Assembly: GCF_032191835.1 (NCBI RefSeq)
Contig: NC_083227.1
Coordinates: 108,624,001-108,688,000 of the forward strand
Direction of reading: 5' to 3'
DNA length: 64,000 nucleotides
From: Heteronotia binoei
Taxonomy: Eukaryota
Shown one piece after another: positions 4,459 through 53,260 of the stretch; position 1 is the first letter of the stretch, and each line of letters starts with the position of its first letter. The notes beneath the pieces were generated by a model. It was not told the origin of the DNA and made no database searches. It saw only the letters and a program-made list of their open reading frames with translations. The translations under genes were made by a program, and so were the position numbers.

Positions 4459-5084
4459 GTAAATTTCTTGAAATGCAGAACTAACTGTATAAGATGAGGA
4501 CTCAGATGATGTAAAGAGTAGAAGTAATTAATTGCATAACAACTAATCATAAGTCATATTTTTTCATAGCAGAATTTTTATATTTTTTAAAAAAAAAACT
4601 TGTATTCAAGAGATCATTATACAAATGGCTGAAGGTAATGGGCAGTCATCTTTCTTTTCCCACCAAGCAGCCCTTTCCAGTTCCAGGAAAGTTTATTCCT
4701 GAAATCACAGGATCCACACTGGCTAATGACCATGAGGATCTGGAGACAGCAGTGGGGAGAGGAAGGAAGAAAAAATCACCATTCCTGTCACTGAGCTCCA
4801 CTGATGAAGGCCCCTTCCACTTTCTGTGTGTAGTCCACTGCTTCACGTGGCTGTTAGTTCATGCGGGACCTGTGTCTTTCTTTCTCAAGATATAAAAGGG
4901 CTACTGTGAGGAGCAGGGAAATTGTGCAGTCCTTGTGATGGATATATATCAATGTTTTCCAATTTTTTTTCATTAATAAAGTAATGATGATCTTTGGTTT
5001 CAATCAGTTTTTCCTACATGTTATGATCAATGGGTTTTTAATTTTTCTTGGGTACTATTGACAGATGTAAATTCTTGGACATGC

Positions 5085-6878
<1,794 letters not shown>

Positions 6879-8547
6879 ATTACTGAAGTCTTTCTCTGTC
6901 TTGGTGTTCTTTATTCACTCAATAGTGTTCACATGTTTACACAACAAAACAGAATGGGCATGCATTTTTAGGAGTCAGGCATGTACTTAGAATTGCCTTT
7001 TCCATTCTGTGAATATTGACTATTGTATATTGTGGTGTTCCTCCAAGAAACACTTGTCATAATGCCTTTATGCTGAGGGGCACTTCATGTGTGCCAGTGC
7101 AGACAGGAAATGTGTATCTAGTGGCTAAAGGTCTTGCATATTTCTGTCTCCCTTTCAAGCGTATAATATATCAACATGATGTGGAAGTGCAGGGTCTGTG
7201 AATAATAGGTAAAATACACATTATCTAGTTAACAATAATGAGGGAAACCAAAATTATGAGTAGTTTTGTGTATAGTAATGGTGCTCAAAACCTTTTGAAA
7301 TGGGACCCACTTCTAAATTTAGTCTTGAATGCCATGGTAAATCTCTGCTGATTTCCATTAGCAGAAGAGGACTTGTTTGATTCCTCCTTCCCACTGTAGG
7401 CCAAAATGTTGCCCTTAGGGGTAGACAAGAAGAACATGATGTAGCAGTCCAAGCTGCAGCAGGAAGTGGTATTGACCCAAATCCCGCCGCTGCCTTAACA
7501 GATTTTGCATGGGATCCAATTTTACTATAGTTTTTGAGAACCTCTTGGAAAGTAATTTCATCCCTCCCCCTCAATATAAGACTTAGGAGTTTCCATCAGT
7601 TAAAACTGAACAAATGAATATTTTACTTTTTATTTAATATTTATAACTATATGGCACTACACAATAACCAGTTGTATTTTGTGGCTGTTTTGTAATTCTG
7701 CAGAGGCAAACTTCGCTCTTTTGACTCACTTGTTGTTCCTTATGGCTCCTGGCCTCGTTACCAACCTCTGAGAGAGTCATAGTCCATTTTGGGGTCGTTA
7801 CCCATGCTGGAGACCTGCTGATGTATAGCATTCTTACTAAAAAATACTAAACCCATCTAGGTGCTTGTTTAAAGGAACACAAACTCTTTTGTCAGTTTGC
7901 CACTAAACACGTAGAATGTTTGTAAAAATATATGCTGTTAACTTCAACAGATCTTCTGTCATGCTTAAAGAAACAAAATTAGAATCGTTTTGGCAACATG
8001 TCAAATTTTGGTGCTTATCTTGGTCTTTGCCAATTGTGGTCTTCAAACTTGTTTCAGGTTGAACACCAAACACCAGGTAATCATTCATGTTTTTCTAATT
8101 ATTTTAGTGACCAATGCTAAGAATGTTTCTAAAAAGTTTTTTTGCTTGATGCACTGAATTTCTGTTTTTTCCCCCACACTTTGAACTTAAAAAATTAAAA
8201 GCTAACAGTGCCTGTCCATTCTTGAGTGTGGCTTTCATAGGCTACTGTCATATGTTTAAAAAAATACAAACCTTTCCTTGTATTAGTCCTGGTTGATCCA
8301 GTTTGAGGATTAAATGAGTTGAATTTATGCAGAGCCTTTAGCTGTCTACAGCTAGCAGCAGCCAGAGTAACTGCCACACCCATGTATGTGCCTGCCACCC
8401 CAAGCAAGGCTCTAGGGTCAGTATATTGAAGGGAGACTTGCTTTAAATGAGCGTCAAACCTTGACAAGTTAAAAGCAAACTACAGCAAGTAGCTACCTGC
8501 TTGACAAACCTGCCAGTCATATTTCTTGTACAGTTAATACTATGTGG

Positions 8548-8606: not shown

Positions 8607-11112
8607 TGTGGAAACACTTTTCATGAAGTCCTATCCATGGTTACTCCAATTTCCCTTTGGTTTCAGGGAGCTTAAACTGCCCTTACTTTGCATTAGACTG
8701 CATTGTAGGTCAAATTAGTAAGTAGTTAATACCCACACTGTGTTGACAGGGTGTGCAAATGTTGTTTAGGGAATATAAATGTGGGGCACTTTCTACAGGT
8801 GAAACATTCAGTAGCATTCAGTCCTAAAGTATTTTTGGTAAAGTTGAAAGATGTGAGGTTTCTTTAAGTGTCCACTAAAATCTGTGTGCTAAGACCACAT
8901 TTCTACTTCCTTTTTATAGAAATATTCATTCTCAGCCCTAATGTTTGTCCTTAGTCCAGTTTGCATGTGCACATAACTCTTGTTATGTGCCTAGTTGCCT
9001 CTGATTTTGAGACAGCTGTGCTTGTAAAAGAATCCCATGTTTCCTCAGGAATTACAGGTGTATGTTGGAGTTTCAATGGAATTTTTTGTTATTCTATCTG
9101 GTTGCTTGTATATCTAAGGGGCTCCCAACTTTCCCCCCCAAGACGTGAAAGATTTCATGACTACACTTGTGCAAATGAAGTAATACACCACCTGATGCAG
9201 AGATTGAATTGACTTTATTATATCAAATGAATAAAGATTAAGCAAAAGGTTATATTTTTCTGATCAGAATTGCAATGTGCTAGTTATTTATTGAAATGTT
9301 GGGACTGACCAGAGTATGTTTCTTTTTTTAGTCAATGCTTGCTGAAGGTGTTAATAAATCTCCCATAATTTCATTGGGGTTTGTTTCCAGGTAATTGTTC
9401 CAGGTGTGAACTAAGTTAAGAGTCATGTCACTCCCTGTCTTTCGGCATTTGGTTTGCTAGAAAGCCAGGAGTTGATGTTTCTGAAGTGTCTTTCCTGAGT
9501 ACAGGAAAAGGTAAAAAGCAGATGTCTCAAACATGATGGAATAGAGATACTCAAGTGAGAGGAGAGCCATTGTTCACTATACATGCTGTCATGATTTCTG
9601 ATGGTCCAAGGTATATTGGCTAATTGTGCTGCAAATCAGGAATGAAGTACTCCAGAAAGGAGTTTTCCTTGCCTAAAATGAAAAGGGACAGACAGCTTTT
9701 ACTGTGAAGTACAACCTCAAATAAAAAGCACATATAGTTATTATACAACAGCATAAATTTTGATGGGGAGGCTTATAATGATGTCCTACATTGGTAAGGA
9801 ATGGTTGAAGAAATGCTGGGGTATAGTTATATGCACATAACTCATTAGACTATCCTAGGTGTGGATCAGTGAACTTCGATGTGTATCAGTGACTGGGAAC
9901 TTGTGTTTTAATTGCACTTCAGGAATTTTCTATATTCCAAAATATCACAGTGGTTCTAGGTGAGGACAGTGAAATTGAATTACAGTTGCACAACTTAAAA
10001 AGAGTCTATTACTTTCTTCTCCATTTATTTCCAGTGTGCTTTTGTTACTCCTATATTCATTCCTTTGTCTGGATTCATAACTATTTTATAAGGATTAGAG
10101 AGCAAAACAATCAAAGGGTGTGCCCAGAATTTTACAGTGGATAGATGCACTATCATATCTGGCAATTCTTGAACGTTTTACATAACGAAATATACAACAA
10201 ACCTAGAATGCAGCCTGCTTACAGAGCTATACATGGACTGAACAATTTGGGGGAGGAGGAGTAATCAAAAGGAGAAGAAAACATAACATTACTATTACAC
10301 AGCATTTGATGTACATCCCCCTTTCTTCTCACTCCAGGAATGTTGATTCCTGGCATCAATCTGCAAGGAATAATATCCATCAGATTTCTGAATAAAACTT
10401 AGTTGGTCTTAAAGGTGAAACTTATCTACTGCTCTGTTCTATTGCTTCAGACCAACACGGCTGCCCACTTGGATCTATCCATCAGAATTGCACTATGTAA
10501 TCTGCATTGAGTCTCCATGAGAGAGTTGTACTATAAATACAGTAAATAAATAAAATAGATCAGTAGACTGCAAAAAGGAGGGGAAAAGGGGGCAAAATTA
10601 CTTTTTTTTCTTTGTCAGTGGGTCAAAAGGGACCACTGGGGCAAGCAATTTCAGCAACAGTACATAAACCTGAAAGAGTTTCTCATTATTGGGAAACATC
10701 TTCATTGTCTGATAGGCAAGAACTATTTAGTAGAGAAAGGTAGGGAATATATTAAATTTTGTTGAGAACAGATTCATCCAAGGAACTGAGTTGCAATAGA
10801 TAAACAACTGAAATTAAAGTTTAAAGCCATTACTCGAATATTTTACTGTAAGGACAACTACTGTAGACACGTCTTTAACTTCAGTATGGCACTTCCAAGT
10901 GGCAGTCTGTGCCCAGAATACATACTGTCTGTAGGAGGATGAAACAGGAGTGGGGGTGAGCAGGAGTTAAGATCTGGTCTTTTGGAGGCATTGTATTCCC
11001 TTTCTCCCCTTTTAATAGCTGATCAAATGAGTAGCGCTCTCTTCCATGACTTAGTCACAAAACATTAAAACTAGCCTGCATTAACTAATTGGCTTGTTTT
11101 CTCATTCTTTAG

Positions 11113-21294: not shown

Positions 21295-22608
21295 ACATGC
21301 CAGCAAGGTCATGTTAAAGATCCTACAAGCTAGACTTCAGCAGTATGTATATCAGGAACTACCAGAAGTTCAAGCTGGTTTTCGGAGAGGTAGAGGAACT
21401 AGAGATCAAACTGCCAACATTCACTGGATTATGGAGAAAGCACGGGAGTATCAGAAAAACATCTATTTCTGTTTCATTGACTATGCTAAAGCCTTTGATT
21501 GTGTGGATCACAACAAACTGTGGCAAGTCCTTAAAGAGATGGGTGCACCAGACCACCTTACATGTCTTCTGAGAAACCTGTATAAGGGTCAAGAAGCAAC
21601 TGTCAGAACAGGATATGGAACAACTGATTGGTTTAGAATAGGAAAAGGAGTTCGACAAGGATTTATTTATTTATTTTTTATTTATTTGGGATTTATATCC
21701 CGCCCTTCCCACAAGTGGCTCAGGGTGTATATTGTCACCCTGCTTATTTAATTTATATGCAGAGTACATCATGCAGAATGCTGGCCTGGATGAAGCAGAA
21801 GCTGGAATTAAGATCACCGGGAAAAACATCAACAACCTCAGATATGCAGATGACACTACTCTAATGGGAGAAAGTGAGGAGGACCTAAAGAACCTCTTGT
21901 TAAGGGTGAAAGAGATCACAAAAGTAGGCTTGAAACCCAACATCAAAAAAACTAAGATCATGACATCTGGCCCCATCACACCTTGACAAATAGAAGGGGA
22001 AGACATGGAAGTAGTGACAGACTTCACATTTCTGGGATCCAAGATCACTGCAGATGGTGACTGTAGCCATGAAATTAAAAGACATTTGCTCCTTGGGAGG
22101 ACAGCTATGGCGAACCTGGGCAGTATAATAAAAAGTAGAGACATCACCCTGCCAACAAAAGTCCGTATAGTCAAAGCGATGGTATTCCCAGTAGTAAAGT
22201 ATGGCTGTGAGAGCTGGACCATAAGGAAGGCCGAGCAAAGAATAGATGCTTTTGAGATGTGGTGCTGGAGAAGAATCTTGAGAGTCCCTTGGGCTGCAAG
22301 AAGAGTAAATCAGTCAGTCCTAAGGGAAATTAACCCAGACTGTTCCCTGGAAGGTCAGATGCTGAAGCTCAAAAACTTTGGCCACCAAATGAGAAGAGAG
22401 TACTCCCTGGAGAAGATCATGATGCTGGGAAAGACAGAAGGCAAAAGATGAAGGGGACAGCTAAAGATGAGATGGCTGGACAGCGTTACTGATGTAACAA
22501 ACAAGAATTTGAGCAGACTTTGGAGGATGGTGGAAGACAGGAGGGCCTGGAGTGACTTTGTCCATGGGGTCGCAAAGAGTCAGACTCAACTGTGTGACTG
22601 AACAACAA
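21295..22608 (+). mobile_element. RTE-BovB-like LINE, 5'-truncated and decayed
   Basis: ORF pieces KILQARLQQY..ELPEVQAGFRRGRGTRDQ, FIDYAKAFDCVDHNKLW, INNLRYADDTTLM, FPVVKYGCESWT; tail ggggtcgcaaagagtcagactcaactgtgtgactgaacaacaa; interrupted by an L2 tail at ~21661-21725. Confidence 0.92.
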
Positions 22609-25080: not shown

Positions 25081-25559
25081 CAGTGGTTCCCAACTTTTTG
25101 GCACAAGGGATTGGTGGTGGTAGGGGGAGAGCTGGGGTTCTTGCTGCCCCACCTGCACCCGCCCTTCCTGCCCCCCTTGGAAGTCTTTAAAGGGGGGGGG
25201 GAGAGACTGGGGCTGCTTCTGCCACCTCCCTGCTCGGCAGTGAGGTGACAGAAGCAGCTGATCTTCCTCTACCTCCCATTTAAAGACCCCCGTTGATCAG
25301 CTGATCTGCAGGGTCTTTAAATGAGGGGTAGGCAAAAAGGAGTGGCAGGGCTGCTCTGCCTCACTCCTTGCAAATGGAGGCAGCCTCGAAGCAAGGCCAC
25401 TCTGTTTTGAGCCCGGCTGGGAAACCAGACTCAGAGGAGAGCACAAGCTGTCTCACTGCTCTCAGCTTCCTAGGTCTGGACCCAGGAAGCCGAGAGTGCC
25501 ATGCCTGCGTAGCCCAGTTGTGCAGCCCCAGGTCCATGGCCTGCGGGTGGGGGCCCCTG
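25081..25559. mobile_element. Non-autonomous hAT-Charlie (MER1-like) element
   Basis: Ends cagtggttcccaactttttggcac and ...gggtgggggcccctg; flanks ggttagat / gtctagat (6/8, central TA). Confidence 0.7.
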
Positions 25560-27735: not shown

Positions 27736-27813
27736 ATGGAAGACAACAGCAGAATTGAGTGCATATTTTTCAGTGAATTCCATCCCACACTTGGACCTAA
27801 AATAACATACCAG
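27736..27813 (+). CDS. NPRL2: NPRL2 (GATOR1 subunit) coding exon 1
   Basis: [26 protein letters not shown]|gttagt; acceptor ctcttatag 2 nt before the ATG. Confidence 0.95.
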
Positions 27814-28680
27814 GTTAGTGTCTAAGTGGTGCCTAAGTGTCTAGGTATGAAATGGATAATTTGGCACGGAAAGAAAAAGTGCCCCCCCCTCTCTCTCGTT
27901 AACTTTTAGTGATTTGGGCTTCCAGACCATAGTGTATATTGCACATTTTTCCCAGAATCTTCTCACATGTAATAAAAGCTTTTCTTTGCATTTTCTATGT
28001 CAGTAATTTGTATGTGAAATAATTTGCTGAAATGTATGTGAATTTTTAAAAGATTGCCTTCCACTTTTCTGTTCTGCATTAGCAACATTCACACATGCAC
28101 TTGCATAAGTACTGTGCCTTAAAGGCACTTTTGCTGTCATTTGTGACACTAAAACAACCAGCTATTGTGGGAGATCCAGACTTCTTTCCTGCAGTGTGCA
28201 GATCTGTGAATTTGCAAGGACCACCAACTGGCCCGGAGAAGAATATAATCTCCTTTTAAAAGCATTTTAATGGGATGTTGTTCTCAGGTGATCAAAAGCT
28301 TCAGCTGCCCATTTCTGTTGCTTTTGAGTTTCTGGGGGTAGAAAGCAACCTTTTCTTGTTGAGAAAATAACATTCTTCTCTCTTTTTTCTGCTAGTGTAT
28401 GCGTTTTAGTTTGAAGTCCTGTGTCAAATTTAGTTGTTTGAATAGTCTGAGCATCTGTCAACTAATATCTATTGCATCACAGATCATGAGCAGCATACTT
28501 CTTGCTCTGTCCTGTGTTATGAACTTTGAAAAAGGCAAGTGCTCCTCATGTACCAGTCTAGTGTAAGACTACGTTTCTTCTTTTATAAGAGGGGAAATAT
28601 CCTTGTTGAAGTTGCCCTATTCTCTGAAGCACTGCCCCATCATTTTAAGAGGGTTTTCTTCCCCTTCTGTTAGTTTAGAC

Positions 28681-29320
28681 CAGAGGTGTCAAACATATGG
28701 CCCAAAGGCTGGATCAGGCCCCCAGAGGGCTCTTATCAGGCCTGCAAGCAACTTACTGCCATCTACTTCCCTTGCTCTCTCTTGCTTTCCTTCTGCATCA
28801 CAGCTTGCTTTGCCAAGCTTGCTCAGTCACACAAGAGCTACAGAGGAAAGCCTCTATTTGTTTCTATTGGCTGACCAGCACATGAAGCAACTTATGTACA
28901 AAAGCTCATGATGCCCAGCCATTTCATGTTTTCCCCTGGGTCTTAGACTCAAAGCATTGACCATGAGATTTCTGTAATGAATGTCAATAAATCAAAAGTA
29001 GGTTTGCAACTTAAAGACACACACCTGAACAGCATGCTCAAGATTGCTACAACACAGACATGGTCTCTAGATTTTAATGCAATAATTCAGAGCAAGAGGT
29101 ATCCATTATCAGAGACTATTAAATAAAGTATTGCAAGAGTATTAATCTTTTAAGCATATTTTAAGTTTTTAAAAGTCTTTAATTGTGTTTGTCTGTGTCC
29201 TTTATAAAGTTTATATCTCTGCTACCTGGCATTACATCTTATGACACACATGGCCTGGTTTGACAAGGTCTTATTTATGTCATTATCGGGCCCATATAAC
29301 AAAGGAGTTTGATACCCCTG
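28681..29320 (+). mobile_element. hAT-Charlie deletion derivative with transposase C-terminal remnant
   Basis: TIRs cagaggtgtcaaac / gtttgatacccctg; perfect 8-bp TSD gtttagac; internal frame ISVMNVNKSKVGLQLKDTHLNSMLKIATTQTWSLDFNAIIQSKR resembles the hATC C-terminus. Confidence 0.88.
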
Positions 29321-29580
29321 GTTTAGACTGTATGTTCCAACTCTTTAATACTGAAACACATCCTACCCTTTAAAAAAAGGCAAAACAGAAATATCCCCTT
29401 TATGCAAACAAATACAATCAAATGGATTCCTTCTGTAGCTTTCCTCTGAGCAGCAAAATTTCTCCTTCTGTCCATGTAATGAAAGTGGGTATTAACTATT
29501 GAAGTTAAAACAATTTGGGCCTTGATGACAGAAACGGATTTTCTAAATGTGTTAAGAGGTTTTGACTATCTGCTGCTTAG

Positions 29581-29739
<159 letters not shown>

Positions 29740-29808
29740 TAAGTAACACTTGATGTTCGTTAAGTAGAAAAATCACTGGTGGATGCTATTAGTGTGGGTC
29801 CTATAGAT

Positions 29809-30775
29809 CAGTGGTCCTTAATCTTTTTGGCAGCAGGGACTGGTTTTGTAGAAAATGATTTTTCCATGGACTGGGGCGGGGAGGGGGGGGTGATGGTTTT
29901 GGGATGATACAGTTGTGCACTTTATTTTTAGGAAAATCACAAATACTCTCCCACAGGCATCCTTTTTTACTTGCCCTCAATAATAAAAATAAAAAGATAT
30001 TATAGATAAGGTTAACTACACAGAGATAATGTCTAAAATGAGAGGCATCTGCTTGCCATTTGCAGTAGCTCCTCTCCTAAATTTCAGAAGTGTTTTGCAG
30101 CTGGGGGAAAAAATCCTTTTCAAGCATCTTTCCAAGTGCATTTGGATTACAAAAGCTGAGCTGCCTTGGGCTCTTTTTACAGACCAGCGAAATGCATAGT
30201 ATACAACCTCTTCCAAAACACAGGACTTGTACGCTGCCCAAGCCTGCCAGGTGCTGCTGGGGTGGACTGCCTAAGCATGGGCAAAGTGGCAAGAGCTACT
30301 TCAGCCTGTCCTCCTGCCCCCCCCCCCAGCTGGAGAGCTCACCAGGTTGACGGGGTGGATGCAGCCCTTGTCCAGGTCCTCCTGGAGGAGCTGGCGGAGG
30401 TGGGGGATGTAGCTGGAGGCCAGGCACAGAGTGTCCGGCTTGGTGTTGGGGAGCACCTGGGACAGGATGGTCTTGAGGTGTGAGAACGCCTTGCCCAGCA
30501 CACGCATGCGGGGCTCGCTCATGTGTGTTGCCCGCATTCCGCTGCGTCTGCTTGCACTTGGCACCTGGCCCATACTGCTTGCCCCCTGCCCTGCTCCTCA
30601 CCTGGCGCTCCTGCAGCCCGACGCCTCTTCTTCCTGGCACCACACTCCTCCTCATCTTCTGCAGTGGAGGAATTGCCCACGAAGGGGCAACAGGGCTCAC
30701 CAACTCCTGTGTGGCCTGGTTGCTAACAGTCCTCAGACTGGTACCAGTCTGCAGACCAGGGGTTGAGGACCTCTG
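29809..30775 (-). mobile_element. Non-autonomous hAT-Charlie (MER1-like) element carrying a host gene fragment (Pack-TIR)
   Basis: TIRs CAGTGGTCCTTAATCT / rc CAGAGGTCCTCAACCC (12/16), MER1-like subterminal sequence at both ends, TSD ctatagat / ctgtagat (7/8, central TA). Confidence 0.85.
30343..30680 (-). pseudogene. MSC: Captured, disabled fragment of Musculin (MSC/TCF21-type bHLH) exon 1 with its splice donor
   Basis: [16 protein letters not shown][+1][56 protein letters not shown]|gtgagc versus [79 protein letters not shown]; upstream acidic/basic tract NSSTAEDEEECGARKKRRR. Confidence 0.85.
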
Positions 30776-32161
30776 CTGTAGATGACTCTCCTTTAATCAC
30801 ACCCATTTAGCAGCGCTTCTCTCCTCTGAGGTTGTCACCCTTTGAGAGATGTGAAGTAACTGAAGAGCTGTCTCTGAGAATGTACAAAGAGCCTTTTCCT
30901 GCACCACTGTCCCTTAACACTTAGAATTAATTCCTTCCAAAACTTTAATAAGGGCCAGCCCCTAGAACCTTTTTAAGGAATGAAACACAGTCTTCATCTC
31001 TGTTGTGTGCCGCTAGGATGCCACGACTGCCTTTAATTTGATTCACAGAAGATGGATCACTCAAGATCTCAACCATTCATTTTTCATCTTAGAAATTAGG
31101 TGTGCTCTCATTCTATCATTGCTTCGCCTAGTATTCCTCTGTCACTTTACTTTCTTCCAATAGAAAGCTACAGTCCCACACATTTATTTGAAAGCAAATC
31201 TCATTGAACTTAGCAACACTTATTTCTGAGTAGATGTGCAATAGAGCAGGCTTCCAGGAGATGAGATCCAAGTTTGTAATGTTACCCATTCGTTGATATG
31301 GTTGCCTATTTTGGTGACAGAAGAAACTGTGATTCCAAAAAAGAAATGTGTCAGTTCATGATAGTGAGAAAGCTTGTCTTTGTGGGGAGAGAGATTCTGT
31401 GAGGATCTGCTGAAAGAATACAAGCCTTGTTCCAACTGTGGGTGTGCACAGCATCCAGGCCCTGAGTGTGAGTAGCTTAATGAGACGGGTAAAATCCATC
31501 CCCCATGCTTCTCTAGCTGCTATCTGTAATCAACTTATAGGGCTACACATGGGCAGCCTGAACTGGTGGATAGGGCTTTTTCCATCTAGGCTTTTTCCAT
31601 CTAGCTTGATGCATGCCAAAATCTGTTTTGGAATCTGTGTGTTACCCATAGCTTGATCAGAGAACAAGTTGGGCTTAATCAGAGTAAGCAAAGCAGCTTG
31701 CCATGTTGTTGTTCGCTTTCTCTTACTGTGTGTAAATGCAGGCAAGTTGTAGAGGGTCTGAAGCACAGGGATAGTAACCCCCAGCATGATTCCTGAACAG
31801 TGACATTCAAGTGCATTCAGGGCTGATCCGCAGTCCAAGCAACCAAGGTGTGTCCTTGAGGCACTGGCAGCTCTGCTGGGACCAGCAGTCCAGGAGAAGT
31901 TGATGGGCATGGCTTATGTCTATTATGCCTCCATGGACCCATGCAGCTGTCACGTAGCCCTCAGGTGAGTTGGCAGAGCTACTGGGGCTTGGCTTGCTCC
32001 CAGTGGTCTGCCCAAGAACAACTCTTGGATCTCCCTCCACCTTCTTTTGGTTTACCAGCCTATTAACACTTTGACAGGTAGATGCTTCCTCTTTTGATTA
32101 GCACACATGGGCCAAAAATAGCTGCCTAATGTATAGCAATAATGAATGACTGATGAATTAA

Positions 32162-32449
<288 letters not shown>

Positions 32450-46663: not shown

Positions 46664-46740
46664 CAGAGGTTCCCAAACTTATTTGTCCTAATGCCCCCTT
46701 TTCAGAAAAAAAATTACTCGACGCCCCCCTGGAAATCTAC
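46664..46740 (+). mobile_element. Left end of a hAT-type non-autonomous element
   Basis: cagaggttcccaaacttatttgtcctaatgccccc... preceded by ctctagac; a matching right end lies at 48895-49010. Confidence 0.6.
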
Positions 46741-52709: not shown

Positions 52710-53260
52710 CAGGGGTCCCCAACCCTCGGCCCGGGGACTGGTACTGGGCCGCAGCCTGTTTTCAGTGGGCCATGCAGCCTCGCCGCCCCCATGGCCAAGT
52801 GGGAAGGAGGCAAAGGCAGCATCACTTGCCACTGCTGCCGGCCGCCCTTCCTTTCCCTTCCTGTTCCTTTGCCTCCCGCCCCCCTGAGCCTGGGCTCTGC
52901 AGCCGCAGCATGCCTGCCTCCTCCTCCGTCACCTCTTTCTCTTCCCTTCCTGTTGCCTCCCCCCCCACCCCAGGCCCTGCCGGCCACGGTATGTCTGCTT
53001 CCTCCTCTGAGCCCACCACCGCCACCCGCCTCCTCCTTCCCTTCCCTTTCTGTCCCGTCGCCTCTCCCCTCCCCCCCAGGCCCTGCCAGAGGTGATGCAC
53101 TGTGATTGCGGGTGACGGTGGGTGGAGAGGCAACGGAACAAGACAGAAAGGGAGGGGAAGGAGGGGGTGAGCACTGTGGGCCTAGGGGGGCGGGAATTGA
53201 AGTGCTGCAGGGGCTGCCTGCCTGGGGCGTCACATGCCCTCCCCAGGTAAGGGTGTTGCA
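52710..53260 (+). mobile_element. hAT-Charlie (MER1-like) left end with GC-rich internal sequence; right end not found
   Basis: caggggtccccaaccctcggcccggggactggtactgggccgcagcctgtt after ctctagtt; three diverged pyrimidine-rich internal repeats. Confidence 0.6.

Follow-up and report, generated by a model that had tools for sequence, protein, structure and literature searches.

A decayed Pack-type hAT element carrying a Musculin gene fragment in an NPRL2 intron of the gecko Heteronotia binoei

Introduction

How did part of the first exon of Musculin (MSC), together with DNA from the intron that follows it, come to lie between the ends of a DNA transposon in an intron of NPRL2? The question is raised by a 967-bp unit in the genome of the gecko Heteronotia binoei (GCA_032191835.1, CM063329.1:108,653,809-108,654,775). 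It was analysed within a stretch of 64,000 nucleotides (CM063329.1:108,624,001-108,688,000), referred to here as the window, in which the unit occupies positions 29809-30775. Window positions 6773-29551 are 100% identical over 22,779 bp to an H. binoei locus on CM063329.1 (L007) retrieved through CYB561D2, and a CYB561D2 exon of the window matches its H. binoei counterpart at 99%. A preliminary description, made from the DNA letters only, had proposed that a hAT transposon had captured exon 1 and intron 1 of MSC and had then transposed as a unit.

The unit is very probably a Pack-type non-autonomous hAT element, the interior of which was replaced by MSC genomic DNA through a template switch during repair, which inserted after the split from Gekko and which is now inert. 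The evidence for the anatomy of the element, for its insertion and for the origin of its cargo is set out below, followed by the question of whether the MSC fragment was captured before or after the element arrived in NPRL2. Coordinates of all features are collected in Table 1.

Table 1. Features of the window discussed in the text (window positions; L001 is the H. binoei MSC locus)
Feature	Position	Strand	Details
Left TSD copy, ctatagat	29801-29808		differs by G>A from CTGTAGAT, the ancestral form in the Gekko empty sites
Right TSD copy, ctgtagat	30776-30783		ancestral state, as in the Gekko empty sites
hAT 5' arm, non-autonomous	29809-29967	+	TIR CAGTGGTCCTTAATCT at 29809-29824; inner end at about 29925-29967
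hAT 3' arm	30702-30775	+	TIR at 30760-30775, reverse complement CAGAGGTCCTCAACCC; MSC homology begins at 30701
Cargo block 1, MSC exon 1 codons 37-180 (GEPCCP ... HPVNL)	30343-30701	-	84.4% identical to L001 6109-6540
Cargo block 2, proximal MSC intron 1 from the GTGAGC donor	30156-30342	-	in the same HSP as the exon part
Cargo block 3, distal MSC intron 1	29968-30157	-	L001 7364-7575; 79.7% identical by blastn, 88.9% excluding gaps, K2P 0.12
NPRL2 exon 2	29647-29738	+	31 residues; mRNA contigs join 29738 to 32230, GT..AG
634-bp non-autonomous hAT-type element, NPRL2 intron 1	28682-29315		TIRs CAGAGGTGTCAAAC... / ...GTTTGATACCCCTG; perfect 8-bp TSD GTTTAGAC
478-bp hAT-type element, CYB561D2-NPRL2 intergenic	25081-25558		TIRs CAGTGGTTCCCAAC... 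/ ...GGGGGCCCCTG; TSD ggttagat/gtctagat (6/8)
hAT end motifs	52710-53233; 46664-46678		CAGGGGTCCCCAACC at 52710; CAGAGGTTCCCAAAC at 46664
Reverse-transcriptase ORF, 777 aa	60556-62889	-	LINE-type
Shorter RT-like ORF fragments	21311-22451; 5048-5647		LINE-type

The ends of the element and its target site

The unit is a non-autonomous hAT element: its terminal inverted repeats (TIRs), its target-site duplication (TSD) and the form of its target are all those of this superfamily, and its extent, its hAT-type ends and its 8-bp TSD are as first described. The two copies of the TSD agree at seven of eight positions, an agreement expected by chance at these fixed positions with a probability of about 4e-4. 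Each 8-mer shows the T and the A that the hAT consensus nTnnnnAn requires at positions 2 and 7, and with their central TA they fit five of the six constrained positions of NYYTARRN. The TIRs of the element are complementary at 12 of 16 positions, and an inverted-repeat check of its ends gave 75% over 24 nt with the TSD counted in. Both TIRs are of the CAG type and share 12–13 of 16 positions with the TIRs of hAT-N3_AC and hAT-N4_AC, two families of Anolis carolinensis. The end motif CAGNGGTYCYYAAYC occurs five times in the window, where 0.3 occurrences are expected. The ends were labelled Charlie/MER1-like in the preliminary description, a putative subgroup assignment that goes by the human MER1-type consensus.

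Between arms of about 159 bp (5') and 74 bp (3') lies an interior of about 735 bp of host genomic DNA, which resembles neither the arms nor the other repeats of the window. The ends of this cargo can be placed to within a few bases, at 30701 and at about 29968, and no bare-element counterpart was found in 145 kb of gecko loci. At the exon-side junction, comparison with the human MER1 consensus hints at a GGTGAGC-type microhomology, of which no claim is made. Further copies of either arm were sought in the window by exact search, by search with three mismatches and by low-stringency self-BLAST, and none was found; two weak matches to the ends, at 25081 and 52710, come from different hAT subfamilies. 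Nor did the arms match anything in the 145 kb of gecko and lizard loci. RNA contigs of at least 90% likeness pile up in the region of the 5' arm, on bins 29774-30041 only, a pattern that might be expected of an arm that is repeated.

The orthologous site in Gekko

If the unit arrived as one insertion, related geckos should carry the site without it, and an empty site with a single ctrtagat had been predicted. Such a site is present in two species. In Gekko japonicus, window positions 29319-29808 align to 8797-9319 of the orthologous locus (L005) and positions 30776-30906 to 9312-9448, so that the flanks abut and overlap by 8 bp; the overlap is a single CTGTAGAT at 9312-9319. The same picture is seen in G. 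kuhli, where the flanks align to 6465-5946 and 5953-5817 of the orthologous locus (L009) and the single target lies at 5946-5953. The two sites read ...gtgtggatt CTGTAGAT gaccc... and ...gtgtgggtc CTGTAGAT gaccc..., and both arms and the whole interior are absent from each. On both sides the Gekko and Heteronotia flanks are 82–88% identical by blastn, or 85–92% when gaps are excluded, with a K2P divergence of 0.09–0.21. The outgroups with an empty site are thus two species of one genus; the available Paroedura picta locus ends about 1.5 kb short of the site, and intron 2 of a lacertid is unalignable.

Because the Gekko sites are empty and hold a single CTGTAGAT, the whole unit goes back to one hAT insertion on the Heteronotia branch, and the left copy of the TSD later mutated from G to A. 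One mismatch in the TSD is compatible with an old insertion, a comparison that has little power.

It might be supposed instead that the unit is not one element, and that two independent hAT fragments flank an MSC-like segment or that the segment is a chimera of the assembly. The imperfect TIRs would sit well with this, as would the lack of RNA contigs over the cargo. However, both Gekko species lack the arms and the interior together around a single 8-bp target, and since everything is missing jointly at one empty site, two independent insertions are excluded. An assembly chimera is ruled out by the cargo itself, which is CpG-depleted and about 16% diverged from the MSC exon and so cannot consist of misplaced MSC reads. 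Overall, an origin other than as a single element is highly improbable.

The cargo and its parent gene

The interior is a copy, made at the level of DNA, of part of the host's own MSC gene. This gene lies on another chromosome, CM063331.1, at about 54.83 Mb, and so outside the NPRL2 gene cluster, as had been assumed. Its exon 1 (L001 6001-6540) ends exactly at HPVNL and is followed by GTGAGG, so that L001 6540/6541 marks the exon/intron boundary. When the element is reverse-complemented, two stretches of it match this locus in colinear order. The first, positions 117-620 of the reverse complement, matches L001 6172-6731 in one HSP that spans the splice donor, beginning in exon 1 and reaching 190 bp into intron 1; the second, positions 619-808, matches L001 7364-7575. 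Between the proximal and distal intron blocks about 630 bp of parent intron 1 (L001 6732-7363) is missing, a segment that is present in Gekko. The proximal intron block is GC-rich and aligns poorly to the parent (72%).

Colinear pieces are also found in the MSC gene of G. japonicus, with the distal block at 7177-7404 of that locus (L002), and MSC of Eublepharis and Sphaerodactylus gives weaker matches in which little aligns beyond the exon. The intron part of the cargo is best matched by Heteronotia MSC. The parental copy is therefore the host MSC gene, colinear with the cargo over part of exon 1 and both intron blocks. Transposon termini thus lie on both sides of a non-transposon insert that has a parental copy elsewhere in the genome, as in a Pack-TIR in the sense of Tan et al. 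2021 (Nat Commun 12:4280, PMC8277862).

At the protein level, the minus strand of the cargo reads in three frames, in pieces of 40, 16 and 56 residues, followed by GTGAGC. The helix-loop-helix (HLH) piece finds MSC proteins as its top matches among 1.84 billion representatives searched (73% identity, E 4e-11), and the variable N-terminal tract is closest to gecko MSC, with 71% identity to H. binoei and 57% to Gekko japonicus. Neither an exact look-up of the cargo ORF (135 aa) nor a sequence search of the PDB returned a match. TCF21 was rejected as the source of the cargo, since the DNA-level match, intron included, is to MSC; the assignment to MSC over TCF21 in the preliminary description is thus upheld. 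Two other parts of that description need narrowing. Exon 1 and intron 1 are both represented, but the exon is limited to codons 37-180 and the intron to two blocks that skip about 630 bp; likewise the MSC-like coding interior does extend from the acidic tract to the donor after HPVNL, but it is interrupted by two frameshifts.

Several MSC/TCF21 predictions in the databases (P0005, P0008, P0012, P0015 and P0017) turn unrelated directly after HPVNL. They have the appearance of automatic gene models in which the exon 1 donor was read through.

An MSC pseudogene made by retroposition from RNA and inserted into a MITE would offer another route to the same arrangement, and the cargo is indeed truncated at its 5' end, as many retrocopies are. 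Against this, the copy still has its splice donor and, colinear with the parent, 375 bp of intron 1; exon 2 and a poly(A) tail are absent, and the TSD is 8 bp long and lies outside the hAT ends. A processed retrocopy was accordingly rejected on the retained donor and intron and on the absent poly(A), and an RNA-derived origin is next to impossible. Alignment across the exon 1/intron 1 junction of host MSC and on into the intron bears out the earlier argument that genomic DNA was captured.

Decay and age of the captured fragment

The MSC copy is dead, and it is old. The pseudo-exon carries two frameshifts, deletions of 9 bp and 3 bp in the HLH, and shortened acidic and glycine tracts. A +1 insertion precedes RMRVL, and the 9-bp deletion removes part of the loop and the start of helix 2. 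The HLH scores 16.7 bits, under the Pfam cut-off of 20.7 bits. The cargo has no start codon, promoter or exon 2, and an intact frame with a basic region and HLH, as in a functional bHLH protein of the MSC/TCF21 family, is lacking.

With gaps excluded, identity to the parent over the exon part is 84.4% (K2P 0.18). The CpG observed/expected ratio falls from 0.86 in the parent, the GC content of which is 0.73, to 0.38 in the cargo. With polarity set by three other geckos (Gekko, Eublepharis and Sphaerodactylus), the exon shows 34 changes unique to the cargo, of which 13 are CpG transitions, against four unique to the parent. Five derived states are common to the cargo and Heteronotia MSC, which indicates that the copy arose on the Heteronotia branch and postdates the split from Gekko. 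Judged by its divergence, which is comparable to the distance between Heteronotia and Gekko, the capture is old and took place early on that branch.

Position in NPRL2 and splicing

NPRL2 lies on the plus strand, with exon 1 near 27754, the end of exon 2 at 29738 and the start of exon 3 at 32230. The element sits in intron 2, 71 bp downstream of the exon 2 donor, with its cargo antisense to the gene; the placement in this intron, given in the preliminary description, agrees with exon mapping and with mRNA contigs. NPRL2 mRNA contigs from two RNA runs splice from 29738 to 32230 over the element. No RNA contigs from the two metatranscriptome sets fall on cargo positions 30042-30577, which is no gauge of either silence or single copy. 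The element today is an inert intron passenger that is removed with intron 2 and has no visible effect on the splicing of NPRL2. An Rfam scan of 28500-31000 returned no match.

Intron 2 (29739-32229) measures 2,491 bp in Heteronotia, of which the MSC-carrying element makes up 39%. Its counterpart in a lacertid has a length of only about 88 bp (L006 2455-2541).

Other hAT and repeat sequences in the window

Two further hAT insertions specific to Heteronotia lie at most 5 kb away. The 634-bp element in NPRL2 intron 1 is missing at the orthologous site in both Gekko japonicus and G. kuhli. RNA contigs from two metatranscriptome runs reach depths in the thousands on it, and it therefore belongs to an abundant, transcribed repeat family. 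The 478-bp element between CYB561D2 and NPRL2, which has a GC-rich interior (0.57–0.61), is absent at the orthologous site in G. kuhli.

Further away, a very GC-rich stretch with a minus-strand ORF of 174 aa follows the end motif at 52710; the region 52710-53233 could be another loaded hAT element. LINE-type retrotransposon copies lie in and around the TMEM115-CYB561D2-NPRL2 cluster.

Mechanism and route of capture

The most likely way in which MSC DNA came to replace the interior of the element is template switching during repair. A double-strand break in or at the element would have come under repair, and DNA synthesis may then have switched template to the MSC locus. Copying would have proceeded from codon 37 of exon 1, over the splice donor and into intron 1, where either a second jump within the intron or a later loss of about 630 bp could account for the skipped segment. 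Synthesis would finally have returned to the element.

Such a switch could have taken place before or after the element reached NPRL2, and the two routes stand at roughly even odds. The bracketing of the whole element by a TSD had been read as a sign that it transposed as a unit. The bracketing does not show this, because it is equally expected if a bare element inserted and was then filled by repair; both routes would leave a TSD at the outer ends of the element and a site that is empty in a distant outgroup, and these features therefore do not establish transposition as a unit.

On the first route, a hAT element took up the MSC fragment at or near another site and reached NPRL2 intron 2 later, by cut-and-paste with the cargo already in it, so that sister copies may exist. 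On the second, a bare hAT MITE inserted into the intron and made the TSD, a later break or excision was repaired via MSC, and the chimera never moved. The survey of Tan et al. provides the frame of reference here. In animal genomes most single-copy cases are attributed to gap filling that is independent of transposition, with a template switch at the site the element already occupies, and multicopy cases to template switching followed by transposition (PMC8277862).

The position of the parent on a different chromosome leans towards movement after capture, because in-place filling is biased to the same chromosome and to distances under 15 kb, and multicopy Pack-TIRs are always distal (PMC8277862). 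Activity of hAT elements on the Heteronotia branch leans the same way, and at the Gekko sites a bare element and the cargo are both missing. On the other hand, about 40% of Pack-TIRs in the same survey, mostly single-copy, are also interchromosomal (PMC8277862), and no second copy was found in the window or in 145 kb of gecko and lizard loci. Around the parent MSC locus, a hAT end motif was sought within 20 kb and none was found, so that no resident sister element was seen there. RNA contigs cover the arm region and not the cargo, which counts weakly against capture elsewhere. Taken together, these points give capture followed by movement something close to an even chance.

Filling in place is the route thought to apply to most single-copy animal Pack-TIRs, and in primates 94% have a bare element at the orthologous outgroup site (PMC8277862). 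Besides the TSD and the empty site, which suit it equally well, the 630-bp skip is compatible with repeated template switching. Its difficulties are the interchromosomal parent, the lack of a bare element in the outgroup, here Gekko only, and a capture and an insertion that both fall early on the same branch, so that neither is seen to precede the other. It is a tentative reading, a little short of even odds.

A wider proposal is that the loaded element moved as a unit as part of a lineage-specific burst in H. binoei, in which hAT MITEs repeatedly captured and spread GC-rich fragments of first exons or CpG islands of host genes. This is rather unlikely. If true, such a burst would be a vertebrate counterpart of the rice Pack-MULEs and would go beyond the few multicopy Pack-TIRs of frogs and alligator.

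Comparison with known gene-capturing transposons

Gene capture by transposons with TIRs had been described as rarely reported in vertebrates, which overstates the case: 370 Pack-TIRs are catalogued in 100 animal genomes, of which 208 have hAT ends, making hAT the commonest carrier (PMC8277862). That survey did not include a gecko, and Anolis, the single squamate in it, seems to be without any, to judge from an unlabelled supplementary table. No earlier case of a Pack-hAT in a gecko was found in the literature searched. Like the animal Pack-TIRs, the MSC element has transposon ends that flank a non-TE duplicate, has no transposase of its own and holds a non-functional gene fragment. It differs from them in its gecko host, in its interchromosomal parent and in a capture much older than the catalogued cases, which are described as young.

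The gene itself, Musculin (MSC/MyoR), is a class II bHLH gene. The element holds its codons 37-180 and part of its intron 1, copied as DNA; in contrast to the gene, this cargo has no start codon, promoter or exon 2, carries two frameshifts and lies antisense within an intron.

Among lizard transposons, the nearest comparison is with the hAT families of Anolis carolinensis, which have 16-bp TIRs and 8-bp TSDs that are mostly of the NYYTARRN type, centred on TA (Novick et al. 2011, PMC3014272). The TIRs reported are CAGTGGTTCCCAACCT for hAT-N3_AC, CAGGGGTCCYCAAACT for hAT-N4_AC and CAGTGKTTCTCAACCT for SPIN-like families (PMC3014272). The MSC element resembles hAT-N3_AC and hAT-N4_AC in the type of its TIRs and in its 8-bp, TA-centred TSD, although its TIRs match at 12–13 of 16 positions only and there is no evidence of common internal sequence. 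Lizard hAT (hobo) elements are also known to pick up filler DNA (PMC3014272). In Anolis this filler is mostly other transposable elements (PMC3014272), whereas the MSC element holds an exon of a host gene.

The Pack-MULEs of rice, like the MSC element, hold genomic exon-intron fragments between transposon ends. Pack-MULEs favour GC-rich, CpG-island-like 5' regions, and the source of the MSC cargo is a GC-rich, CpG-island-like 5' exon. The two differ in that the MSC element is a hAT with an 8-bp TSD and Pack-MULEs are Mutator elements with TSDs of 9–11 bp, and in that the MSC element gives no sign of expression.

The MSC element is thus an old, inactive addition to the known class of animal Pack-hATs, ordinary of its kind and well anchored. 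It provides a reptile example of DNA-level capture of a gene fragment by a hAT element in which the parent, the exon-intron junction, an empty site in two species and the decay of the cargo are all documented. On its own its value is as an example, and it would be of more value as part of a genome-wide pattern: if hAT elements with first exons or CpG islands as cargo are numerous in H. binoei, the species would be a good vertebrate system for the study of capture by TIR elements and of the preference for GC-rich 5' regions.
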